In this document: piece after piece, positions 8,951-51,539 of the stretch | Numbering within the stretch: position 1 is the first letter of the stretch | Layout: every line of letters begins with the position of its first letter | Assembly (NCBI GenBank): GCA_965644295.1 | Contig: CBFFRP010000271.1 | Span: 1-64,000, forward strand | DNA: 64,000 nt | Direction of reading: 5' to 3' | Source: Paraphysomonas bandaiensis | Taxonomy: Eukaryota; Protista; Chrysophyceae | The notes under the pieces: model-generated | Databases searched by the model: none | Told to the model about the DNA's origin: nothing | Seen by the model: only the letters and a program-made list of their open reading frames with translations | Made by a program: the position numbers and the translations under genes

Positions 8951-11900
8951 ATGAGAAATCCCGCGTAATCTTAGCGAAGGTGAACACGGTCGGAGCGTAA
9001 TCTATGCTGTCAGCTTCGTTGGTCCACGGGTAGGCGGGTGGTAAAATAAGCGCAAAATCTCGGTGTACCAGCGAGCCTATATTATGGCCACGCACTCGGA
9101 ATGGGGAAATACTATTGACGAAGCGCTATGTTGTAAAAATAGTATTGCGATAGAGTATATTTTGTTCCCTGTATCCCTGGTTGAGAGAATATAATTATGG
9201 GGAATACGTATCAATTAATGATAATATGAGATAGATGATGTTGGTAATAAGTTTTACTAATCTTTTTTATATATATATTATATAATATAATATATGTGAG
9301 TTGTTGAAATACAGTTACTTAAGCTATTTCACCTTCCAAATATTGTATTCGGTAATGGTAAGTTTTAGTTGTTACTGCTTAAAGTTCTAGTATAGTACAA
9401 CTATAATATTATAATATTATGATGATAACTATAATAAGACAAACAACACACTTAAAGCTATCTATTGCCACTCTGAACCATAAACAATCACTACTTCATA
9501 AGCTCTAGTTACACACTGTTACAAACACTAAATACGTGGTCAAATCAGTTGACCAGGTTTGGTCATGCCACAGACTTTTATGTCAAACTTTGATTGTCAT
9601 TGTAAAAATAACAATTACAAAAAATAGTAATTATATATCTAATTTTTTAGTGATTATAAAAAGTTTTCTTATTTTCCAGTGCTATTGTGGTAGGAATGTA
9701 TAAGAAAGTCTGATTATTACATGAGAACGGTTGGGTACAGAAACTAGTATTTATATCTATAGGCTGACTAAACTGGACTTGCTATGTACTACTAGTGGCG
9801 GGCAACAGTCTCAGGACTGCTTGTGCATTGCTGCGAGCACCATGGGTATACGTTCTAGTAGGAGAGAGATGGAGTATTTGGAGGAGTTATGTGGTAGGAA
9901 TGTATACTCATACAGAATCGTTATAAATAATACAGTATGTATATTCACCATACTATAGACTACTTTGAACTAGATTTGAAAGTCAACGAATAGCCAAATA
10001 TATTTAAACACTATATGGTATATATGGTATATATATACTAGTTGTACGTATTATACACATATACATCTATATATACGCGGCATATGTATTGAAAATATAA
10101 ATATTACTGTAGAATAGTCACAGCAATTATTATGTCATATATATATATTGTGTTTCGTTTGCGCTGTATACGACGTTCTAATTCGATTATTTCGTATACA
10201 GTAGATATGTATTATAATATATGCTATTTTCAAAATTATGTCTATTTCACTATTCGATACATATATATATTATTATGGTAAAAATCATGATATTATTGGT
10301 AATAATAATATATATTATAATAAGCAACGCCCATGTATGTATTTCAAGATAACATTTTATATAAAAAAGCATTTATATGAATCATTCTCTAGAGCATCTA
10401 GCTATATTATATAGCTAACTAGCTTAACTTTTAGCATATATATATATATAGCATTCATCGCTTATTTTGAATCCTCCCTGTAATGATATGGACCGTATGA
10501 CAACAACCCAGCGGTAAGTTACTTGAGGCACATAAAAGGTTATTAGTATATATAATATATATATATTATGATTATTATGTAAGCGTTATAATATTATTAC
10601 TATATATTATTATATATAAAATATATATTATAATATACACAGTAACTTCGTCAAAGAAAAGGACTAAAAGACAGCAATGGGAAATAGTGACAGAACCTAC
10701 AACAGAATGGTGGGTAGATCAAAGCACTCTCTCATTTGAGAATGTTGTGACCGGAAGACGTCGACATAGTAGTGGGATATAGTACAAAGAATAGCTCTAT
10801 ATATAATATTATGCTTGATGGAATAGCTTGAAGAACTGTATAATATATATGTATGTTGTGTAGTCGGTGACTTTTGTTGCTCTGTAAAACTGAAGTAATA
10901 TGCATGAAAGTAGTAAAACAATATTCTTCACACTATTAATAATATATTCATATATATAGTTACTTATTGTGCTTATATATATTTAAACCTTTTCCCGACC
11001 ATCATCAAAATTTTCACCTGTAGTTTATACATTTCACCAGGTTGTGGTATTACCTCGACTTATAATATCTATATTGTGATGATGTGTGCAGTAGTTTATA
11101 AATTATATATATATATTATATTATGACTGTTACAAAAACGATGGTACATGCACACAATAATGCTGGTAAATACAACATCACATCCGTGTAGAAAACAGTA
11201 TAGAGGAAGCATGACAACAAAGCCAGTAACAGCAGCAGTGAATGCAAGAATGGAAGTCGTTCTTTCAAATAGCAAGCCTAAAGTCGTATGATATAATTGT
11301 TATTCATTCAATGAGAGCATATATATTATTTAATAAACTGCCATACCTTCGGGTCAGCTCAGGTGTGCTTGACATACGACGTCACTTCTCTCCTTTCTCG
11401 GTTCTCAACTTGGGTCAATAGGATTATAATGTATCCAGCCACGCAGTATAATAATAAGGGCCTGTCCATTAGCATCAATACAAGGACAATTATAAATTCA
11501 TCCACGTGTGTGAAACCTTCGACTTTTTCGTACTGTTTGATCCACTATTTGACCGATTTAATGTCAAGATTATATATCGTTTGGAAAAGGACTTGAGGAA
11601 TACAGTACCACTTTGTTTGGATCCGTTCCTATTCAAGTTTCTATCCATTTATATCGGTTTTCCTTAAGGGAAAGCCTTTAAGAGATCTGTTTACCTCGGC
11701 AGTAGTTTGCCGCAGTGCAGAAGTATATTGTATATTAAGAAGGATATGCAACAGATTTAGATTACATCATACATGACAGGAAGTATACTCTTGTGATATA
11801 TATGCTCAGATTTTCCACATCACAATACTATAATGGTCATGGCATAAATATAGAATATATGACAGTTATTGACTATAATTTCCATTCGAATTGGTTTAAC

Positions 11901-35056: not shown

Positions 35057-35394
35057 ATCTCAACACTTACTTCACTTCTGGTGAGAAATAACACCCCAAG
35101 CTTACTATAGATCTATATATTATATATCATATGTTGAGGAGTCGATCCCATACCCATATATATATATATCATATATCAGTAACTAAATATTCTACCTTAC
35201 TTCACCCTTTATTACTACGTGTTGATCTCAACACTTACTTCACTTCTGGTGAGAAATAACACCCCAAGCTTACTATAGATCTATATATTATATATCATAT
35301 GTTGAGGAGTCGATCCCATACCCATATATATATATATCATATATCAGTAACTAAATATTCTACCTTACTTCACCCTTTATTACTACGTGTTGAT
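35057..35394. repeat. Perfect tandem duplication, 2 x 168 bp
   Basis: atctcaacacttacttcac...ctacgtgttg repeated with period 168. Confidence 0.9.
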
Positions 35395-36561
35395 TTCACA
35401 TGTTGCACACTGCGCACTATTGACTCACTTCTATTGCACAATATGCACCTCATATATAAAATAGCACACAACAGAACGCAACATTGCGTTTGATAAAGTT
35501 GAACAATCTAATGCTGCGATATAATAGTAACTGGTATATATCTGTTAATTATAAAGACGGTGGTTTGATATGTATAACACTACAATTATTTTGTTTATCT
35601 AGTTTTAGAAAGAGATGAAGTTCTTGATCATTTTTAGGGGACTGGAAGGTAAACATGACCTTACTACTGTAGAAACTTTGCGAATTACATACTTAAGTCA
35701 TGAATAGTTATGACAAATCCCGTGTAATCTTTGTGAAGGCGAACATGGATGTGGAAGCAGGGTGACTGTCTCATATCTGCGCGCGATCTCTAAGGCCAGC
35801 CAAGATGATGAACGGGTGGGCTGGTGTGTGGCTACATAGAATCAGCGCAAACTCTTGGTGTTATATGTGGTGTACCAGCAAGCCTACACTACAGCAGTGA
35901 CGATTGTTGAGTTTTGCTGTATAGTATAGCCATTAGTGTTGGAATTTCATTGTAGTTGTACTAAAGTAGCATATTGACTCCTATTGCTAAATAATCAGAC
36001 ATTCACTACTACTAGCATATTGACTGAGTCCCACAGTTATATAATATATATTTTATATATTGTTTAAGATCTTATACATATTGGGCTGCGGGGCCATGAA
36101 AAATGTATTGAATTGCAATATATTACAATTATTTAGTTTACTTGCTACAATATATTTATTATTATTTTAGAAATATTTGGCCTCGCAATATATTGCATTA
36201 TATATATATTATATCATTGTTCGTCCTTCTTGTGCGTCTTTGAAAGTATATTTGATTAATCATAAAATTTTATACAACATAATAATCACATAACTCATCT
36301 ATTACTACAATATCGTACGATTCTGATTACCTGCAACGAAGAACGCTATTCATGTTATTAGGTTTTCATCTTCATGTTGTTGAATTTGTAACCTCTACGG
36401 AGTTACTAACGATCGAGGAAATGTTTTCTTCTTAGCACCCAAAAAGTATTAACGCAATATTGCAATATAATTATTGTTTATCATTGGCCATTATACTATT
36501 ATATATTTTTTCCAGTAATATAATGCAATATACTTATTTGTTATCGGTCCTGTAAGGCGGT

Positions 36562-37497: not shown

Positions 37498-38901
37498 TCA
37501 GAAATGAACAGCTGTTCGCATCATATTAGCCATCGCTGTAACATCCTCATCGATTTCACAGGAATCTTCAAGGGCCAAGAAAAGTTTCTCAAATTTAAGA
37601 AAATGATTCTTGGCGCGCTCTACTTCATCATTGTTCATCAATGTGATCGAGTAGTTTAAATGAATTAAGTAATCTTCACCGAGGTCGATAGCTTTATCGT
37701 AAGCGGCACATGAGTTTTCAAAATCGTCGAGCCTAATAGCAAAATAAGTACAATTTACACAGCAAAGACAATATTACTTGCTCAATGACACAGCCAGGTA
37801 CATGTACGCTCGCGCGTATGTTGGTTGCAGATTAATAGCGGTGCTAAAATAATGAAACGCGGAAGCATATTGTCCAACTGTCAGATGTACGATTCCTAAA
37901 TTATAACTGATAATCCACTCAAAGGGGGCTAGGTATACAGCCCGTTTCAAGCACGAAACAGCGGCGACATATTTCCCTTTGCCAAAAAAGCACATCCCCA
38001 CATTATTCCACAGTTGGGGTGAGTTCGGAGTTTGCGTCGCTGCAACACGATATTTCACAAGTGCAACATCCATGTCTTGATTGTCTTGTATGATACTCCC
38101 AGCAGCTAAAATAGTTTTGGGATTCTTTGGATCGTAGGTAAGTGAATTTCCTAGGTATTCGAAAGCTTTCGTGTTATTGCCCATCTTTAAATACAGTAAA
38201 CCGACGGTTGTTAATATATCAGAACTCTCAGGAACTACTTCCAAAGTTTCCAAATATGTTCGTAAAGCTTCATCTTCATTTCCCATCAGTCTATATGCCC
38301 GGCCCAGCTGGGAATATGTTGTCTCATGTCGCCGAATGGAATTAGCATTGTCAAAGCAATCAATTGCATTTTCGTACTGTTTCAGATAAAGAAAACACAT
38401 ACCCTTATTGTGCCAAATCTCTCTATCTTCAGGTGAAAGCTTTTCAGCCTCTTCAAATACATCTAGTGCTGTTTTGTGTTTCCCAAGTAGAAATAGAGAG
38501 CGCCCGACCTGTTTCAAATTATTCACATTTAGTGGGTTCATGCACAAGGCCGCTTGAAATGTAGTTAATGATTCTTCAATACGGCCCTGCTGTCTCAAAA
38601 TAAGAGCTACGAAAAATATTTATTTCCCGTATAATATTGCTTAAATATGACCTTTTATATATAACGGATACTCGGATTGCCCGTTACATGCACGCAATTG
38701 ATCCTCGATAACCTTTAAGCATTCAGAATAGTCCTGTTAAAGTATCAAAAACAGATCACTATAAATGTATAAATGGTAACCATTCCACACCTTCCTTGTA
38801 TAGCACATATGAATATACCAGTTTTGCCGCATTCGGACAGTTGACTTCGTCCCAAGATTATTTGAATTCTTTGGTACAGACGATGGCATAGTGCCCAACA
38901 T
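37498..38901 (-). CDS. BBS4: Bardet-Biedl syndrome 4 protein (BBSome TPR subunit), exons 38901-38791, 38733-38652, 38606-37778, 37732-37498
   Basis: NWYIHMCYTRKDYSECLKVIEDQL..EYPLYIKALILRQQGRIEESL..KQVGRSLFLLGKHK..SPQLWNNVGMCFFGKGKYVAAVSCLKRA. Three GT-AG introns of 45-57 nt restore the frame. Confidence 0.95.
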
Positions 38902-39019
38902 CTTAAAAATCAGTACACTTGAATTTCAGACTGCTATTCAAATAAGCCGAAGACAAAAACAACTTGATATTACTTTCTAATTCCTTGACTTCATACAGAG
39001 AAAGACAAGGTTTACAGCA

Positions 39020-39152
39020 TCATGTATGTCTACGTATGTATGTAGGTAGGTATGTATGTATGTATGTATGTATGTATGTATGTATGTATGTATGTATGTA
39101 TGTATGTATGTACGTATGTATGTATGTAGGTAGGTAGGTAGGTAGGTACGTA
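39020..39152. repeat. (TATG)n/(TAGG)n microsatellite
   Basis: Directly visible in the sequence. Confidence 0.95.
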
Positions 39153-39379
39153 TTTCATTGTGTATGCATAGCGAGATGAAAGATTCACTTTAGTTTTTGT
39201 GTAACTTCCTCCTCCTCCTCCAACATCAAGACCTTTCATTCAATCTCGCGTTATGTCAAGTGTTAAACTTTACTGGAAAATAACAACTAAGGCGGGACAC
39301 TCACCTTAATATCCTGCCGTATAATTCTGAAGAAGTGCTGTTGAAGTAAATAAGTTCTATACAGATAGGATCTCTCGTC

Positions 39380-39695
39380 ATGCCGGACTCTAAAGCTGGG
39401 AGCAAAGACAGCCCTAGGAGTGATGATAGTTCAGGCGACAAAACTCAGAGCAACAAGCTCGAAGGATTTAGTTCACCCCGTAAAAAGTTAATGCAAGCCA
39501 AGATACAAGCCGAAGCAATTGATAATGAGGTTGGTTTAGACCTACTCGTTTGACTGTTTTAATAAACCTTGTACTAAACAGAATAATTTGATCGACAAGC
39601 ACAAAATTAGACAAAATGTAAGCCGTAATTTTGTCTCAGGCTTAATATCGGAAAGTTTGGAGACAATTTCTGATACCAAGATCACTTCGAAGTAG
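39380..39695 (+). CDS. Putative small spliced orphan protein (87 aa), exons 39380-39529 and 39582-39695
   Basis: MPDSKAGSKDSPRSDDSSGDK..AEAIDNE|NNLIDKHKIRQNVSRNFVSGLISESLETISDTKITSK*. The 52-nt GT..ctaa..CAG intron is phase 0 and of the size typical for this window. Confidence 0.55.
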
Positions 39696-40770
39696 AATGT
39701 AGATGTCGTATAGTGTCTTTTCGAAATGGAAAGAATTATTGAAATGAAAATACGTGCATTTGTATAGTTCTATGGAGTATTGACATATGATTTGCCAATT
39801 CATTTCTACTTCGTATGTGGTGACAACATGTCGGCACGGAAATGTTATGTCATCATTATGATATGTAGAGTGTTCTCAACAAACATGAATTAATTAATAT
39901 AAAGTCCATCTCTTTTTCTTCTCTAGACGAATGGCTCTCTAATAATTTTATATTATATCTTACGCATCGTAGCTGGTTAACTGACTGTAATTAGTTCAGT
40001 ATCACCACAAACGAAAATTCGTAAACCAGAGCAAGGGAAATAATGTATATTGCAATAGTATTGTAGATAGATTGTAGCTTCTCAATAAGAATACGAGTTA
40101 TAATCGGTTGCGGAAATGTATTTGTCCCTACTATATTTTTTCCGACATTTCTACTAAACTAAAAAGTGCCATTTGTTTCTACTATTTTTTTCTTACATTC
40201 CTACTAAGTTAAAAATTTTATGGATTCTAATAAATTTCAATACGGTTCAACTGCCATTTTTTAGTTTAGTTAGAACATCTGAAAAATTTGTAGGAACATA
40301 TGGAAGTTTTAGTAGCTTTAAAAATGACATCGTAGTTGGTTGTAGGTTACGTAACTTGCATTAGATAAGGGAGATATATTTAGAAGTTTATGTGAATGAA
40401 TAAGACCAAATGGCATATCAACATTCTATTTTACTTTGACCTTGGTGCTTGGGCAACGCACAAATGGACAAATAGTTTTGTAGACTTTTCAATTTTGTAA
40501 TTTCATGTTTACCCGTCTACTACTAATATATTATACGTTCAGGTAAAGTAATAATAGCTCACAATACAACCATTAATACGGTGAGAGCGACTGCCGTATT
40601 ATTCGTCCTCTACCAACCCAGATTCTGACTGAGTGATGTATATTTTGAACTGAGTGAATACTCTAGTAATAGATATGTGTGACTTGTATTGCTACGTGAT
40701 GGCTATATGCTGTATTAGGGTATAGATAGATAGCACTACTATGTATAATGTAACCATTGCATAATGCAGG

Positions 40771-43700
40771 GTAAGTAATACTGTTCATAAAGATGATGAC
40801 GGGGTCGTATGTCGTATATATGCGGTATTGTTCTGATTATTGTTGTGCGTTGTTACTATACACTGTACTAACTGTGTATGTATGATGGTGTAGGAGAAGT
40901 GCAACAGGAAGAAGAATGTCGTCAACATTCGTGGCGACATATCCAACGATGACCCGGAGGCGGAGGAAGAGATACCACGAAAGTGCACGAGCAGTGTAAG
41001 TAATAATACTGTTCATAAAGATGATGACGGGGTCGTATGTCGTATATATGCGGTATTGTTCTGATTATTGTTGTGCGTTGTTACTATACACTGTACTAAC
41101 TGTGTATGTATGATGATGGTGTGTAGAGGAGAAGTGCAACAGGAAGAAGAATGTCGTCAACATTCGTGGCGACATATCCAACGATGACCCGGAGGCGGAG
41201 GAAGAGATACCACGAAAGTGCACGAGCAGTGTAAGTAACAATACTGTTCATAAAGATGATGACGGGGTCGTATGTCGTATATATGCGGTATTGTTCTGAT
41301 TATTGTTGTGCGTTGTTACTATACACTGTACTAACTGTGTATGTATGATGGTGTGTAGAGGAGAAGTGCAACAGGAAGAAGAATGTCGTCAACATTCGTG
41401 GCGACATATCCAACGATGACCCGGAGGCGGAGGAAGAGATACCACGAAAGTGCACGAGCAGTGTAAGTAACAATACTGTTCATAAAGATGATGACGGGGT
41501 CGTATGTCGTATATATGCGGTATTGTTCTGATTATTGTTGTGCGTTGTTACTATACACTGTACTAACTGTGTATGTATGATGATGGTGTGTAGAGGAGAA
41601 GTGCAACAGGAAGAAGAATGTCGTCAACATTCGTGGCGACATATCCAACGATGACCCGGAGGCGGAGGAAGAGATACCACGAAAGTGCACGAGCAGTGTA
41701 AGTAACAATACTGTTCATAAAGATGATGACGGGGTCGTATGTCGTATATATGCGGTATTGTTCTGATTATTGTTGTGCGTTGTTACTATACACTGTACTA
41801 ACTGTGTATGTATGATGATGGTGTGTAGAGGAGAAGTGCAACAGGAAGAAGAATGTCGTCAACATTCGTGGCGACATATCCAACGATGACCCGGAGGCGG
41901 AGGAAGAGATACCACGAAAGTGCACGAGCAGTGTAAGTAACAATACTGTTCATAAAGATGATGACGGGGTCGTATGTCGTATATATGCGGTATTGTTCTG
42001 ATTATTGTTGTGCGTTGTTACTATACACTGTACTAACTGTGTATGTATGATGATGGTGTGTAGAGGAGAAGTGCAACAGGAAGAAGAATGTCGTCAACAT
42101 TCGTGGCGACATATCCAACGATGACCCGGAGGCGGAGGAAGAGATACCACGAAAGTGCACGAGCAGTGTAAGTAACAATACTGTTCATAAAGATGATGAC
42201 GGGGTCGTATGTCGTATATATGCGGTATTGTTCTGATTATTGTTGTGCGTTGTTACTATACACTGTACTAACTGTGTATGTATGATGGTGTAGGAGAAGT
42301 GCAACAGGAAGAAGAATGTCGTCAACATTCGTGGCGACATATCCAACGATGACCCGGAGGCGGAGGAAGAGATACCACGAAAGTGCACGAGCAGTGTAAG
42401 TAACAATACTGTTCATAAAGATGATGACGGGGTCGTATGTCGTATATATGCGGTATTGTTCTGATTATTGTTGTGCGTTGTTACTATACACTGTACTAAC
42501 TGTGTATGTATGATGGTGTGTAGAGGAGAAGTGCAACAGGAAGAAGAATGTCGTCAACATTCGTGGCGACATATCCAACGATGACCCGGAGGCGGAGGAA
42601 GAGATACCACGAAAGTGCACGAGCAGTGTAAGTAACAATACTGTTCATAAAGATGATGACGGGGTCGTATGTCGTATATATGCGGTATTGTTCTGATTAT
42701 TGTTGTGCGTTGTTACTATACACTGTACTAACTGTGTATGTATGATGGTGTGTAGAGGAGAAGTGCAACAGGAAGAAGAATGTCGTCAACATTCGTGGCG
42801 ACATATCCAACGATGACCCGGAGGCGGAGGAAGAGATACCACGAAAGTGCACGAGCAGTGTAAGTAACAATACTGTTCATAAAGATGATGACGGGGTCGT
42901 ATGTCGTATATATGCGGTATTGTTCTGATTATTGTTGTGCGTTGTTACTATACACTGTACTAACTGTGTATGTATGATGGTGTAGGAGAAGTGCAACAGG
43001 AAGAAGAATGTCGTCAACATTCGTGGCGACATATCCAACGATGACCCGGAGGCGGAGGAAGAGATACCACGAAAGTGCACGAGCAGAGTAAGTAACAATA
43101 CTGTTCATAAAGATGATGACGGGGTCGTATGTCGTATATATGCGGTATTGTTCTGATTATTGTTGTGCGTTGTTACTATACACTGTACTAACTGTGTATG
43201 TATGATGGTGTAGGAGAAGTGCAACAGGAAGAAGAATGTCGTCAACATTCGTGGCGACATATCCAACGATGACCCGGAGGCGGAGGAAGAGATACCACGA
43301 AAGTGCACGAGCAGTGTAAGTAATAATACTGTTCATAAAGATGATGACGGGGTCGTATGTCGTATATATGCGGTATTGTTCTGATTATTGTTGTGCGTTG
43401 TTACTATACACTGTACTAACTGTGTATGTATGATGATGGTGTGTAGAGGAGAAGTGCAACAGGAAGAAGAATGTCGTCAACATTCGTGGCGACATATCCA
43501 ACGATGACCCGGAGGCGGAGGAAGAGATACCACGAAAGTGCACGAGCAGTGTAAGTAACAATACTGTTCATAAAGATGATGACGGGGTCGTATGTCGTAT
43601 ATATGCGGTATTGTTCTGATTATTGTTGTGCGTTGTTACTATACACTGTACTAACTGTGTATGTATGATGGTGTGTAGAGGAGAAGTGCAACAGGAAGAA

Positions 43701-46700
43701 GAATGTCGTCAACATTCGTGGCGACATATCCAACGATGACCCGGAGGCGGAGGAAGAGATACCACGAAAGTGCACGAGCAGTGTAAGTAACAATACTGTT
43801 CATAAAGATGATGACGGGGTCGTATGTCGTATATATGCGGTATTGTTCTGATTATTGTTGTGCGTTGTTACTATACACTGTACTAACTGTGTATGTATGA
43901 TGATGGTGTGTAGAGGAGAAGTGCAACAGGAAGAAGAATGTCGTCAACATTCGTGGCGACATATCCAAGGATGACCCGGAGGCGGAGGAAGAGATACCAC
44001 GAAAGTGCACGAGCAGTGTAAGTAACAATACTGTTCATAAAGATGATGACGGGGTCGTATGTCGTATATATGCGGTATTGTTCTGATTATTGTTGTGCGT
44101 TGTTACTATACACTGTACTAACTGTGTATGTATGATGATGGTGTGTAGAGGAGAAGTGCAACAGGAAGAAGAATGTCGTCAACATTCGTGGCGACATATC
44201 CAACGATGACCCGGAGGCGGAGGAAGAGATACCACGAAAGTGCACGAGCAGTGTAAGTAACAATACTGTTCATAAAGATGATGACGGGGTCGTATGTCGT
44301 ATATATGCGGTATTGTTCTGATTATTGTTGTGCGTTGTTACTATACACTGTACTAACTGTGTATGTATGATGGTGTAGGAGAAGTGCAACAGGAAGAAGA
44401 ATGTCGTCAACATTCGTGGCGACATATCCAACGATGACCCGGAGGCGGAGGAAGAGATACCACGAAAGTGCACGAGCAGTGTAAGTAACAATACTGTTCA
44501 TAAAGATGATGACGGGGTCGTATGTCGTATATATGCGGTATTGTTCTGATTATTGTTGTGCGTTGTTACTATACACTGTACTAACTGTGTATGTATGATG
44601 GTGTGTAGAGGAGAAGTGCAACAGGAAGAAGAATGTCGTCAACATTCGTGGCGACATATCCAACGATGACCCGGAGGCGGAGGAAGAGATACCACGAAAG
44701 TGCACGAGCAGTGTAAGTAACAATACTGTTCATAAAGATGATGACGGGGTCGTATGTCGTATATATGCGGTATTGTTCTGATTATTGTTGTGCGTTGTTA
44801 CTATACACTGTACTAACTGTGTATGTATGATGGTGTAGGAGAAGTGCAACAGGAAGAAGAATGTCGTCAACATTCGTGGCGACATATCCAACGATGACCC
44901 GGAGGCGGAGGAAGAGATACCACGAAAGTGCACGAGCAGAGTAAGTAACAATACTGTTCATAAAGATGATGACGGGGTCGTATGTCGTATATATGCGGTA
45001 TTGTTCTGATTATTGTTGTGCGTTGTTACTATACACTGTACTAACTGTGTATGTATGATGGTGTAGGAGAAGTGCAACAGGAAGAAGAATGTCGTCAACA
45101 TTCGTGGCGACATATCCAACGATGACCCGGAGGCGGAGGAAGAGATACCACGAAAGTGCACGAGCAGTGTAAGTAATAATACTGTTCATAAAGATGATGA
45201 CGGGGTCGTATGTCGTATATATGCGGTATTGTTCTGATTATTGTTGTGCGTTGTTACTATACACTGTACTAACTGTGTATGTATGATGATGGTGTGTAGA
45301 GGAGAAGTGCAACAGGAAGAAGAATGTCGTCAACATTCGTGGCGACATATCCAACGATGACCCGGAGGCGGAGGAAGAGATACCACGAAAGTGCACGAGC
45401 AGTGTAAGTAACAATACTGTTCATAAAGATGATGACGGGGTCGTATGTCGTATATATGCGGTATTGTTCTGATTATTGTTGTGCGTTGTTACTATACACT
45501 GTACTAACTGTGTATGTATGATGGTGTAGGAGAAGTGCAACAGGAAGAAGAATGTCGTCAACATTCGTGGCGACATATCCAACGATGACCCGGAGGCGGA
45601 GGAAGAGATACCACGAAAGTGCACGAGCAGTGTAAGTAACAATACTGTTCATAAAGATGATGACGGGGTCGTATGTCGTATATATGCGGTATTGTTCTGA
45701 TTATTGTTGTGCGTTGTTACTATACACTGTACTAACTGTGTATGTATGATGATGGTGTGTAGAGGAGAAGTGCAACAGGAAGAAGAATGTCGTCAACATT
45801 CGTGGCGACATATCCAAGGATGACCCGGAGGCGGAGGAAGAGATACCACGAAAGTGCACGAGCAGTGTAAGTAACAATACTGTTCATAAAGATGATGACG
45901 GGGTCGTATGTCGTATATATGCGGTATTGTTCTGATTATTGTTGTGCGTTGTTACTATACACTGTACTAACTGTGTATGTATGATGATGGTGTGTAGAGG
46001 AGAAGTGCAACAGGAAGAAGAATGTCGTCAACATTCGTGGCGACATATCCAACGATGACCCGGAGGCGGAGGAAGAGATACCACGAAAGTGCACGAGCAG
46101 TGTAAGTAACAATACTGTTCATAAAGATGATGACGGGGTCGTATGTCGTATATATGCGGTATTGTTCTGATTATTGTTGTGCGTTGTTACTATACACTGT
46201 ACTAACTGTGTATGTATGATGGTGTAGGAGAAGTGCAACAGGAAGAAGAATGTCGTCAACATTCGTGGCGACATATCCAACGATGACCCGGAGGCGGAGG
46301 AAGAGATACCACACGAAAGTGCACGAGCAGTGTAAGTAACAATACTGTTCATAAAGATGATGACGGGGTCGTATGTCGTATATATGCGGTATTGTTCTGA
46401 TTATTGTTGTGCGTTGTTACTATACACTGTACTAACTGTGTATGTATGATGGTGTAGGAGAAGTGCAACAGGAAGAAGAATGTCGTCAACATTCGTGGCG
46501 ACATATCCAACGATGACCCGGAGGCGGAGGAAGAGATACCACGAAAGTGCACGAGCAGTGTAAGTAACAATACTGTTCATAAAGATGATGACGGGGTCGT
46601 ATGTCGTATATATGCGGTATTGTTCTGATTATTGTTGTGCGTTGTTACTATACACTGTACTAACTGTGTATGTATGATGGTGTGTAGAGGAGAAGTGCAA

Positions 46701-49700
46701 CAGGAAGAAGAATGTCGTCAACATTCGTGGCGACATATCCAACGATGACCCGGAGGCGGAGGAAGAGATACCACGAAAGTGCACGAGCAGTGTAAGTAAC
46801 AATACTGTTCATAAAGATGATGACGGGGTCGTATGTCGTATATATGCGGTATTGTTCTGATTATTGTTGTGCGTTGTTACTATACACTGTACTAACTGTG
46901 TATGTATGATGGTGTAGGAGAAGTGCAACAGGAAGAAGAATGTCGTCAACATTCGTGGCGACATATCCAACGATGACCCGGAGGCGGAGGAAGAGATACC
47001 ACGAAAGTGCACGAGCAGAGTAAGTAACAATACTGTTCATAAAGATGATGACGGGGTCGTATGTCGTATATATGCGGTATTGTTCTGATTATTGTTGTGC
47101 GTTGTTACTATACACTGTACTAACTGTGTATGTATGATGGTGTAGGAGAAGTGCAACAGGAAGAAGAATGTCGTCAACATTCGTGGCGACATATCCAACG
47201 ATGACCCGGAGGCGGAGGAAGAGATACCACGAAAGTGCACGAGCAGTGTAAGTAACAATACTGTTCATAAAGATGATGACGGGGTCGTATGTCGTATATA
47301 TGCGGTATTGTTCTGATTATTGTTGTGCGTTGTTACTATACACTGTACTAACTGTGTATGTATGATGATGGTGTGTAGAGGAGAAGTGCAACAGGAAGAA
47401 GAATGTCGTCAACATTCGTGGCGACATATCCAACGATGACCCGGAGGCGGAGGAAGAGATACCACGAAAGTGCACGAGCAGTGTAAGTAACAATACTGTT
47501 CATAAAGATGATGACGGGGTCGTATGTCGTATATATGCGGTATTGTTCTGATTATTGTTGTGCGTTGTTACTATACACTGTACTAACTGTGTATGTATGA
47601 TGGTGTAGGAGAAGTGCAACAGGAAGAAGAATGTCGTCAACATTCGTGGCGACATATCCAACGATGACCCGGAGGCGGAGGAAGAGATACCACGAAAGTG
47701 CACGAGCAGTGTAAGTAACAATACTGTTCATAAAGATGATGACGGGGTCGTATGTCGTATATATGCGGTATTGTTCTGATTTTATTGTTGTGCGTTGTTA
47801 CTATACACTGTACTAACTGTGTATGTATGATGATGGTGTGTAGAGGAGAAGTGCAACAGGAAGAAGAATGTCGTCAACATTCGTGGCGACATATCCAAGG
47901 ATGACCCGGAGGCGGAGGAAGAGATACCACGAAAGTGCACGAGCAGTGTAAGTAACAATACTGTTCATAAAGATGATGACGGGGTCGTATGTCGTATATA
48001 TGCGGTATTGTTCTGATTATTGTTGTGCGTTGTTACTATACACTGTACTAACTGTGTATGTATGATGATGGTGTGTAGAGGAGAAGTGCAACAGGAAGAA
48101 GAATGTCGTCAACATTCGTGGCGACATATCCAACGATGACCCGGAGGCGGAGGAAGAGATACCACGAAAGTGCACGAGCAGTGTAAGTAACAATACTGTT
48201 CATAAAGATGATGACGGGGTCGTATGTCGTATATATGCGGTATTGTTCTGATTATTGTTGTGCGTTGTTACTATACACTGTACTAACTGTGTATGTATGA
48301 TGGTGTAGGAGAAGTGCAACAGGAAGAAGAATGTCGTCAACATTCGTGGCGACATATCCAACGATGACCCGGAGGCGGAGGAAGAGATACCACGAAAGTG
48401 CACGAGCAGTGTAAGTAACAATACTGTTCATAAAGATGATGACGGGGTCGTATGTCGTATATATGCGGTATTGTTCTGATTATTGTTGTGCGTTGTTACT
48501 ATACACTGTACTAACTGTGTATGTATGATGGTGTAGGAGAAGTGCAACAGGAAGAAGAATGTCGTCAACATTCGTGGCGACATATCCAACGATGACCCGG
48601 AGGCGGAGGAAGAGATACCACGAAAGTGCACGAGCAGAGTAAGTAACAATACTGTTCATAAAGATGATGACGGGGTCGTATGTCGTATATATGCGGTATT
48701 GTTCTGATTATTGTTGTGCGTTGTTACTATACACTGTACTAACTGTGTATGTATGATGGTGTAGGAGAAGTGCAACAGGAAGAAGAATGTCGTCAACATT
48801 CGTGTGGCGACATATCCAACGATGACCCGGAGGCGGAGGAAGAGATACCACGAAAGTGCACGAGCAGTGTAAGTAATAATAATGTTCATAAAGATGATGA
48901 CGGGGTCGTATGTCGTATATATGCGGTATTGTTCTGATTATTGTTGTGCGTTGTTACTATACACTGTACTAACTGTGTATGTATGATGGTGTAGGAGAAG
49001 TGCAACAGGAAGAAGAATGTCGTCAACATTCGTGGCGACATATCCAACGATGACCCGGAGGCGGAGGAAGAGATACCACGAAAGTGCACGAGCAGAGTAA
49101 GTAATACTGTTCATAAAGATGATGACGGGGTCGTATGTCGTATATATGCGGTATTGTTCTGATTATTGTTGTGCGTTGTTACTATACACTGTACTAACTG
49201 TGTATGTATGATGGTGTAGGAGAAGTGCAACAGGAAGAAGAATGTCGTCAACATTCGTGGCGACATATCCAACGATGACCCGGAGGCGGAGGAAGAGATA
49301 CCACGAAAGTGCACGAGCAGAGTAAGTAATACTGTTCATAAAGATGATGACGGGGTCGTATGTCGTATATATGCGGTATTGTTCTGATTATTGTTGTGCG
49401 TTGTTACTATACACTGTACTAACTGTGTATGTATGATGGTGTAGGAGAAGTGCAACAGGAAGAAGAATGTCGTCAACATTCGTGGCGACATATCCAACGA
49501 TGACCCGGAGGCGGAGGAAGAGATACCACGAAAGTGCACGAGCAGAGTAAGTAATAATACTGTTCATAAAGATGATGACGGGGTCGTATGTCGTATATAT
49601 GCGGTATTGTTCTGATTATTGTTGTGCGTTGTTACTATACACTGTACTAACTGTGTATGTATGATGGTGTGTAGAGGAGAAGTGCAACAGGAAGAAGAAT

Positions 49701-50500
49701 GTCGTCAACATTCGTGGCGACATATCCAACGATGACCCGGAGGCGGAGGAAGAGATACCACGAAAGTGCACGAGCAGTGTAAGTAATAATACTGTTCATA
49801 AAGATGATGACGGGGTCGTATGTCGTATATATGCGGTATTGTTCTGATTATTGTTGTGCGTTGTTACTATACACTGTACTAACTGTGTATGTATGATGGT
49901 GTAGGAGAAGTGCAACAGGAAGAAGAATGTCGTCAACATTCGTGGCGACATATCCAACGACGACCCGGAGGCGGAGGAAGAGATACCACGAAAGTGCACG
50001 AGCAGAGTAAGTAATAATACTGTTCATAAAGATGATGACGGGGTCGTATGTCGTATATATGCGGTATTGTTCTGATTATTGTTGTGCGTTGTTACTATAC
50101 ACTGTACTAACTGTGTATGTATGACGGTGTGTAGAGGAGAAGTGCAACAGGAAGAAGAATGTCGTCAACATTCGTGGCGACATATCCAACGACGACCCGG
50201 AGGCGGAGGAAGAGATACCACGAAAGTGCACGAGCAGTGTAAGTAATACTGTTCATAAAGATGATGACGGGGTCGTATGTCGTATATATGCGGTATTGTT
50301 CTGATTATTGTTGTGCGTTGTTACTATACACTGTACTAACTGTGTATGTATGATGGTGTGTAGAGGAGAAGTGCAACAGGAAGAAGAATGTCGTCAACAT
50401 TCGTGGCGACATATCCAACGATGACCCGGAGGCGGAGGAAGAGATACCACGAAAGTGCACGAGCAGAGTAAGTAATACTGTTCATAAAGATGATGACGGG
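40771..50500 (+). repeat. Tandem array of 42 near-identical 225-237 bp units plus a partial unit; each unit is intron-like plus exon-like
   Basis: Units counted from the recurring 'tcataaagatgatgacgggg' anchor at 40785...50482. Length classes are mainly 228, 232 and 235 bp. Confidence 0.97.
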
Positions 50501-51539
50501 GCCGTCGAATTCCAGCAGAATGCAGATCTAATACCTCCCACTGTTTCTGAACTTCGTCAGGAAATGATGCCCGGGCTAGCAGAACTTCGTGATCTATCTT
50601 TTTATGAGAAGAAATGATGACCCACTACCTGCGGATGATCTTCCACCTACTAGTAATAATGTGCCCCCAGCGGTTGTTGCCAAGTCGCTTCCGATCATAG
50701 GTACTAGTACTACTGTAAGTAGTAGCTTGGTAAAGATAGCTATATGCGTATGCAATGTATCCAAAATCAGGCTATTCGGTTCGAGAGTATGCAGTCTCAA
50801 GCGAGGCAGATGTAGCTATTTATATGAAAATATGATATATTACAAAACACAAGTAGCAGGGCCAACTTGTAACGCAATAAATAATGCTAATAACAACTAT
50901 ACTTGCGACTTTTTCTTTATCTTTAACCTCTCAGATACAAATTACAGTAAAATAATAACTCAATACTTAGATATATATATGAAACCTGGTGAAATTGCTT
51001 TACCAGGTTTTGGTATTTTACCTCGACTTATTCTCACTTTTTTGACCTGTAACTAATATAAAATTTATGAAATGTCTCTAAAAACATGTTCTCTTTACGC
51101 CTACTACATTATTAATTATTGCAAAGCGCAACAAAACTTCAACATAAATCAACATTTTCAAAAATTCACCAGGTTTCGACCGTTTTACCAGGTTTGGACA
51201 TCACATCCACTTTATACTGCGAGGAATATTTTAGGGACCCATCAATAGGCCTGCTCTATGCTGAGACCAATTGGTCAGGCAGATATTGCGTTAATTTATT
51301 TATACTTTTTCTCTGAGGTGTTGTATACTCTCTGAAAAACCAGTATATCGGTTGATTGAGAATGAATAATATGGTAGTCGTATTTGCCGTTATATTTGTT
51401 GAATGGCGAGCTATTATTACCCCGAACACATAATATATATGTCGTACATAAAACATTGAAATTGTTAATTTGAAATCTTACATGAAGTAGGCAATTAAAT
51501 TTTCGAGTATATATTTTTGTTAGTCTCCCACACATATTC

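Follow-up and report, generated by a model that had tools for sequence, protein, structure and literature searches.

Introduction

Target-primed reverse transcription, the process by which non-LTR (non-long-terminal-repeat) elements insert, leaves as its signature a variable 5′ truncation combined with one sharp 3′ end that retroposon families have in common. Tandem arrays in which each unit holds one intron and one short exon are known from the mammalian SNORD116-type loci, which are hosts to small nucleolar RNAs (snoRNAs), and some repeat proteins arise by tandem duplication of an exon with its intron. Retrotransposons and other mobile elements can also give rise to satellite DNA, out of tandem repeats that they contain (Vondrak et al. 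2020, PMC7004042; Tetris, Dias et al. 2014, PMC4079207; reviewed in PMC12628747). Here we compare with these systems a locus of the chrysophyte Paraphysomonas bandaiensis, in which a cassette that looks like a complete intron plus an in-frame exon is repeated 42 times. The locus lies in a stretch of 64,000 nucleotides, referred to below as the window (assembly GCA_965644295.1, contig CBFFRP010000271.1, positions 1 to 64,000 of the forward strand), and had been put forward in an earlier reading of the window, the original prediction, as a possible gene for a long repeat protein.

We find that window 40763–51029 is most probably a dead, 5′-truncated retrocopy of a transposon-associated gene, whose cassettes have expanded into a young local satellite and which is not translated. 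In the parent gene, three tandem exon–intron cassettes lie between a central domain and a C-terminal motif. Its RNA, with a tail of the type found on long interspersed nuclear elements (LINEs) at the 3′ end and with its introns kept, would have been copied into the genome by target-primed reverse transcription, giving about 40 truncated copies with 1–4 cassettes as well as a LINE subfamily that carries a relic of the gene with 2.7 cassettes. In the window copy, the cassettes already present in tandem would then have multiplied, by unequal crossing-over or by slippage in replication, to 42 units (9.7 kb) with a higher-order structure. Read in this way, one genome records the birth of a satellite, with its progenitor (three cassettes), its dispersed intermediates (1–8), the expanded array (42) and an insertion bounded to the base, and the locus illustrates that perfect splice signals and open frames in an array need not mean a gene.

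The array in the window

Tandem Repeats Finder (TRF) reports one tandem array at 40777–50505, in which a period of 228 bp is repeated 42.1 times with 98% matches, and anchoring on GTATGT-CGTATAT gives 42 units, with lengths of 228 (16 units), 235 (12), 232 (7), 230 (2), 225 (2), 237 and 229 bp. TACTAAC occurs 42 times in the array and GTAAGTAA 43 times, and the units differ from one another by 0.9% on average and by 2.6% at most. Each carries GTATGT, GTAAGT and TACTAAC, then an AG ahead of an open, purine-rich segment; 22 units have the acceptor TGTGTAGAG, where the second AG is required. Recurrent variation in unit length lies inside the intron or amounts to 3 nt, and a strong GC skew and a purine bias on one strand run along the whole array.

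Much of what the original prediction had described is confirmed by these results, namely the 42-unit repeat itself, the first GTATGT donor at 40807, TACTAAC at 40866–40872, the segment at 40894–41034 (141 nt, 47 aa), a second donor, GTAAGT, which lies at 40996 and gives a 102-nt exon, and the need for the second AG in a part of the units. Its statement that the modules are free of stops is correct for 40 of the 42; the frame breaks in the other two, units 24 and 35, are directly visible, each being a 2-nt insertion in the exon-like segment that shifts the frame and leads to an in-frame stop. The features of the locus are as follows, with the basis of each in brackets.

40763..51029, + strand: discrete insertion, read as a 5′-truncated retrocopy of the 3′ part of the parent gene or element, including the expanded array (four empty-site paralogues, AT duplication, sharp family 3′ terminus)
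40763..50505, + strand: 42-unit tandem array of the exon–intron cassette, with blocks of about 8–9 units as higher-order units (TRF, unit table, recurring variant haplotypes)
40894..40995, + strand: example of a 102-nt cassette exon encoding 34 aa in phase 0, with GTAAGT as its donor (homology to the 84-nt exons in the parent gene, locus L059)
40996..41128, + strand: example of a putative cassette intron, with the donor GTAAGT, then TACTAAC, and TAG or TAGAG as acceptor, GTATGT lying inside it at 41035 (126–135 nt across units)
46141..46370, + strand: unit 24, with exon 2-nt insertion, frameshift and in-frame stop (unit comparison)
48678..48907, + strand: unit 35, with exon 2-nt insertion, frameshift and in-frame stop (unit comparison)
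50366..50872, + strand: decayed terminal exon (27-copy alignment, intact 163-aa version in L059, indel list)
50873..51029, + strand: 3′ untranslated region (UTR) with AATAAA (50876–50881) and a LINE-type terminal stem-loop and tail, ending ...ACCTCGACTT (terminus common to several retroposon families and to elements carrying LINE open reading frame 2, ORF2)
40626..40762, no strand assigned: upstream half of an older retroposon ('family B') split by the insertion (match to contiguous copies)
51030..51212, no strand assigned: downstream half of the split family-B retroposon (match to contiguous copies)

Boundaries of the insertion

The boundaries of the insertion are observed directly. The two flanks both match a retroposon family different from that of the array and are contiguous in four paralogous copies (L026, L028, L029 and L030), and by these empty sites window 40763–51029 is one discrete insertion into another retroposon. 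Where the empty sites read ...ttgcat/tctcac..., the window has ...ttgcat, the insert and then attctcac..., which amounts to a duplication of AT, 2 nt in length. At the 5′ edge of the insert the last few exon bases, GCAGG, run directly into GTAAGT, so that the array starts with an intron, and the DNA upstream of 40763 is foreign retroposon DNA that holds nothing of the array's own element.

At the other end, the last unit of the array is open up to a TGA at 50615–50617, and the original prediction had ended its protein here, in a tail (50506–50617) that it took to be unique. The position of the stop is right, but the tail is unique only inside the window; the segment 50490–50640, which holds the claimed C-terminal peptide and the stop, has at least 40 copies in the genome, with identities of 76–91%. 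When the window is aligned with 26 other copies it is found to have a 4-nt insertion within 50592–50599, without which the frame runs on, and since this insertion shifts the frame the TGA is secondary. The ancestral stop of the terminal exon is equivalent to window 50870–50872, and further frame-shifting indels follow in the window exon; between them, the indels of this exon have destroyed the conserved C-terminal motif.

Dispersed copies and a proposed LINE machinery

The dispersal of the cassette is likewise a direct observation. A search of the 62.6-Mb genome with two units gave matches to about 90 pieces, spread over at least 35 contigs and about 40 places, where all genome counts of the unit and of the tail are lower bounds. 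The typical dispersed form consists of 2.7 copies of a 225-bp version, 93–95% identical to the window unit, and is found on at least 20 contigs, while the largest outside the window has 7.8 copies (contig C551); older versions of 77–85% identity are dispersed too, and the older repeats with three to four copies of 197 bp are 78–87% identical to the window unit. Directly after the dispersed units come about 400 bp with about 89% identity to window 50627–51029. The 5′ ends of 27 fetched copies are variable (equivalent to window 50052 to 50481) and most of those that reach the 3′ end stop at 51029–51033, every copy that reaches the terminus ending in ...ACCAGGTTTTGGTATTACCTCGACTT, after which unrelated DNA begins.

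This terminus of about 26 nt also closes other, unrelated retroposon families in the fetched loci, which suggests that one LINE machinery may recognise a specific 3′ tail. The terminus (...ACCAGGTTTTGGTATTACCTCGACTT or ...GGGCATCACATCGACTT), after a short hairpin, was seen in the window at 11036–11060, 51002–51029 and about 51140–51212, and at many other loci.

A common 3′ end, variable 5′ truncation and a short target duplication are what retrocopies have, and the copies here were probably made by way of RNA. They are like LINE-mediated retrocopies of the 3′-tail-dependent (stringent) type in their sharp common stem-loop terminus, in their variable 5′ truncation and in the 2-nt duplication or microhomology at the target; unlike these, and unlike classical processed pseudogenes, they have introns in every copy and no poly(A) tail. 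The intron loss that is normal in retrocopies is thus not seen, the spacers being kept throughout, and no exon–exon junction was found in the genome with three junction patterns at 2–3 allowed mismatches.

A link to a particular LINE is provided by a young subfamily (L013–L015 and L062), in which about 4.2 kb separate the C-terminus of a LINE ORF2 from the cassettes and tail downstream of it. More than 140 copies of this C-terminus are present in the genome, of which 13 are 98–100% identical, and a full-length ORF2 found elsewhere (L058; 1669 aa), which is about 80% identical over the C-terminus, has the domains Exo_endo_phos (apurinic/apyrimidinic endonuclease, APE) and RVT_1 (reverse transcriptase, RT). 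The young subfamily carries the upstream repeats and the promoter region of the parent gene described below; missing from it are the coding sequence that reaches from exon 1 to the central domain, and a part of the terminal exon. The central domain of the parent gene is not part of the LINE ORF2.

Several further observations were made on these elements. The LINE subfamily (L013–L015 and L052–L057; contigs C433, C432, C263, C69, C288, C338 and C354) has at least nine copies with an ORF2 C-terminus that is 100% identical, and appears to have been active or duplicated very recently; its 3′ region of about 5 kb is full of tandem repeats of 23/46 bp, 233 bp and about 550 bp, after which comes the gene relic. 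The ORF2 C-terminus also matches, at 51–52% identity, parts of two open frames of 3731 and 2400 aa (C644:12527-13306; C661:39540-40319), unusually long for a LINE. Marine metagenome contigs hold the 3′ end of the element at 97% identity (L031, ENA ERZ17293822) and the intact terminal exon at 98% (L068, a TARA_SAMEA6038428 scaffold), and so the organism or a close relative is present in ocean surveys.

The parent gene

The parent gene itself can be observed in near-intact form on contig C538 (locus L059), next to a gene with the domain DUF7869, and the end of C165 holds a second copy. An unamplified progenitor, proposed in the original prediction as something to look for, therefore exists, and with its three cassettes it supports the alternative offered there, that of a satellite born from a gene. 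The gene consists, in order, of a first exon, a set of four cassettes of 169 bp, a central exon of 253 codons, a set of three cassettes of 197 bp and a terminal exon. The first exon begins with ATG and encodes a CxxC...CxxC zinc ribbon. The 169-bp cassettes (L059 2743–3690, near the N-terminus) each consist of a phase-1 exon of 105 or 108 nt (GDEERLEKDDVEDQGGRYP...) and a 64-nt intron (CACG/GTACGT, ...CATAG/, the slash marking the boundary), and the 197-bp cassettes of an 84-nt phase-0 exon encoding CNGKKNVVEIRGDISNDDSEVPRKRTSR and a 113-nt intron (AGG/GTAAGT, TACTAAC, TGTGTAG/). The terminal exon is intact, with 163 codons, a TAA stop and, after it, AATAAA.

The C538 gene does twice what is known of repeat proteins formed by tandem duplication of exon–intron cassettes (169 bp four times, 197 bp three times), with exons that are symmetric in phase and multiples of three in length. 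The window array, unlike such genes, lies outside an intact gene, is without a start and upstream exons, and has its frame broken in three places.

We searched the exons of L059 singly. With the central exon, a search of 1.84 billion proteins found 52 cluster representatives, of which 14 lie below 1e-30. The first exon aligns to the N-terminus of one relative (P0004, E = 6e-8), the terminal exon to the last 40–60 residues of two others (P0008 and P0002, E = 2e-5), and the cassette exon resembles, as judged by eye, an acidic "VVEI.DD..E" box of the relatives. The full-length relatives retrieved are single uninterrupted open reading frames (ORFs) of 376–619 aa, one fetched sequence being an N-terminal fragment, and show the same order as L059, namely an N-terminal zinc ribbon, an acidic linker, the central domain, a basic, acidic and coiled-coil stretch, and the C-terminal motif. 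As for a name for the parent protein, Pfam and PHROGs gave only a weak zinc-ribbon match, a PDB profile search gave no match and the ESM Atlas nothing usable. A structural model of the central domain (L059 3688–4446; m78141058df2a) is confidently predicted to be beta-rich, with a pLDDT (predicted local distance difference test) of 81; it found no Foldseek match and no convincing PDB match, and VIA-align gave Z scores of up to 6.0 to BAH/Tudor/KOW-like barrels, which the tool rates as unreliable.

In relatives from other samples the gene adjoins a gene of about 900 aa with DUF7869 (PF25273), and the pair occurs at two places in one assembly. A similar picture emerges in this genome, where DUF7869 matches pair with paralogues of the central domain on at least nine contigs (C93, C132, C139, C298, C345, C346, C538, C546 and C656), the pair being convergent in the relatives (L063–L065) and divergent here. 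The zinc-ribbon/central-domain gene and the DUF7869 gene look like a two-gene mobile unit. Clusters of DUF7869 in the Atlas sometimes also occur with a DDE transposase family (11% of the members of one cluster), and from this co-occurrence DUF7869 may be a DDE-type transposase.

Spacers and donors

The three unique exons of L059 are collinear with one uninterrupted protein, and can therefore be joined only by removing the pieces between them, each of which has GT..AG ends and leaves the phase intact. This is strong indirect evidence that the L059 spacers are true introns, which would be spliced out in the parent gene, and the unit is very probably an exon plus its intron. The intron/exon look of the window unit is therefore inherited from a real split gene and is not a chance co-occurrence of motifs.

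Outside the window, AGG/GTAAGTA is kept in about 60 of the 87 anchor matches to the unit, and the donor site reads GACAGT in eight units, among them the terminal unit of the intact-type L059, where the exon must read through. GTATGT, on the other hand, is present in the young subfamily only, its place being taken by GTCGTA in the intact subfamily and by GTAGTT in others. Of the two donors that the original prediction had named, GTAAGT is therefore conserved across subfamilies, while GTATGT, to which it had given the headline, is not. By this comparison the real cassette of the window is predicted to be a 102-nt exon (34 aa) with an intron of 126–135 nt, and the further 39 nt that had been taken for exon owe their open frame to homology with the first part of the continuation of the terminal exon.

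Could the 'introns' be spliced nowhere, the C538 gene being itself decayed and the GT..AG ends and TACTAAC a relic, or a coincidence in an AT-rich spacer? It would agree with this that the spacers are retained in all retrocopies, that splicing is here read from DNA and not from RNA, and that the native introns next to the array are of another kind: the neighbouring BBS4-like gene has three introns of just 45–57 nt, with the donors GTGTGG, GTCATA or GTAATA and none with TACTAAC, and TACTAAC is not required by this organism's introns. We nevertheless consider it unlikely, since the three C538 exons match the N-terminus, the middle and the C-terminus of uninterrupted relatives in the same order, and to join them seven spacers must be taken out (three after the exon-1 and 169-bp-cassette exons, one more cassette, and three to four in the 197-bp set), all with GT..AG and all neutral in phase. 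The exon lengths are multiples of three (84, 105 and 108 nt), and the donor is GACAGT only where read-through is needed. A scan of JGI metagenome contigs did not find the spliced junction, the unspliced control being absent as well.

Coding capacity of the array

The original prediction had proposed a live protein of about 2,000 aa built from 42 spliced modules. For this to be so, a modular gene would have to be transcribed from a promoter upstream of the array, and its RNA spliced one unit after another, perhaps with the two broken units skipped, to encode a long repeat protein. Several properties of the array are what such a gene would show, in that 40 of the 42 modules are open, the recurrent length variation spares the frame, the splice signals are good, having been inherited from a gene that very probably is spliced, and the first GTAAGT is preceded, at a distance of 7 nt, by an ATG. 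This ATG, however, is in phase 1, whereas the modules are in phase 0, and there is no in-frame Met in any module of the array. The window copy has no upstream exons, no zinc ribbon and no central domain, and the DNA upstream of it is the other half of the split retroposon. That no clear start exon could be seen upstream had been noted from the outset and is borne out, the array starting with an intron at the edge of the insertion.

The frame does not run uninterrupted to the conserved C-terminus either, since there are frameshifts in units 24 and 35 and, ahead of the C-terminal motif, in the terminal exon. Among 29 copies of the family the substitutions number 246, 321 and 312 at codon positions 1, 2 and 3, and because there is no excess at the third position we see no coding constraint, as expected of dead copies; the substitutions within the array are too few for such a test by codon position. 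The 40 modules are open because the units are young, and openness in copies that are 99% identical is no sign of selection. Finally, no matching protein was found among 5.8 billion database proteins except unspliced metagenomic ORFs: the last exon of the window and the intact terminal exon match nothing but ORFs of short metagenomic DNA contigs (ENA, TARA), which continue into the intron and are not evidence of a transcript. Taken together, we regard a live repeat-protein gene at this locus as scarcely credible.

A bolder version would have the LINE routinely retropose unspliced RNA of the transposon-linked gene and so scatter exon–intron cassettes, with the window copy still transcribed and spliced into a modular RNA or, by exon skipping and from a start that has escaped recognition, into a repeat protein. 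Retroposition would then be a generator of new spliced repeat genes, but we consider this very unlikely.

Non-coding function

An array of this kind might instead act without being translated, as a long non-coding RNA or a source of small RNAs, perhaps spliced, or in a chromosomal role as some satellites do. The GC skew and the purine bias on one strand across the array would fit such a function. The unit, however, reaches the threshold of no Rfam family (the best match is snR8, with E = 0.69 and 19.7 bits against a threshold of 45 bits), the UGAUGA box of the intron is UGGUGA in the intact subfamily, the intron folds no better than its shuffles (z = -0.41), and just one long array is found in the genome, so that we hold a functional non-coding array to be improbable.

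The possibility of a snoRNA or other known RNA in the unit was rejected on the same grounds, the only Rfam matches being sub-threshold ones to snR8 and HOTAIR, with a box not conserved in older copies and the fold as given. The comparison with the SNORD116-type host arrays thus extends to a repeat unit of intron plus exon and no further, since no snoRNA is detectable in the window intron and the exon is derived from coding sequence.

Expansion into a satellite

The number of cassettes is 1–8 in the other copies and 42 in the window. Along the array, variant haplotypes recur every 7–9 units, for instance a G variant in units 14, 22 and 31 and an A variant in units 10, 18, 27 and 34. This higher-order pattern is directly observed, and indicates repeated duplication of blocks of roughly 2 kb, as by unequal exchange. 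The tail of the window copy is 91% identical to its nearest relative among the 27 fetched copies, whereas the units are about 99% alike, and from this difference the array would have been expanded or homogenised in place, after the insertion.

The reverse order, in which a source element already held a long array and its 10-kb RNA was copied whole, gains something from the variation in cassette number among copies of the element, from 2.7 to 7.8. But no other copy has more than 8 units, the units share 99% identity against a divergence of at least 9% between the tail and any of its relatives, and the higher-order blocks point to local unequal exchange; expansion before retroposition is therefore unlikely in our view.

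We thus return to a retrocopy that was inserted and then expanded. The monomer is homologous to a short tandem repeat in a dispersed element, the array sits inside a copy of that element with the element's own end, its copy number is far above that of the source (42 against 2.7–7.8) and it carries signs of unequal exchange, all as in a satellite derived from a mobile element. The abundance of a classical satellite is not seen, as just this array and the one of 7.8 units were found in the 62.6-Mb assembly, in counts that are lower bounds. The mechanism matches the known route from a repeat in a mobile element to a satellite: as in the described cases (PMC7004042, PMC4079207, PMC12628747), a short internal repeat of the element (2.7–4 copies) has grown, at one insertion, into a long and homogeneous array that shows higher-order structure, and its monomers are also dispersed. 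What is particular here is a monomer made of a complete exon plus intron, that is, of a coding exon and a spliceosomal intron rather than of UTR or LTR filler, and, unlike abundant satellites, one long array beside the small one, which makes this a nascent local satellite.

Some points weigh against this account. Introns are retained in all copies, which fits poorly with efficient splicing and requires unspliced nuclear RNA as the template; either such RNA is the usual template or the splicing of the cassettes is inefficient. The splicing of the parent gene and the silence of the array are deduced from DNA sequence, and the order of insertion and expansion from one comparison, that of divergences. 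The length of 42 units is that of the assembly and depends on it.

Neighbouring features

The BBS4-like gene mentioned above, which encodes tetratricopeptide repeats (TPR), lies at window 37500–39400 on the minus strand and has very short introns with weak donors. Just upstream of its first recognised exons is a (GTAT)30 microsatellite at 39034–39153. At 35057–35398 of the window a 168-bp unit, found by TRF, is present twice with 99% identity.

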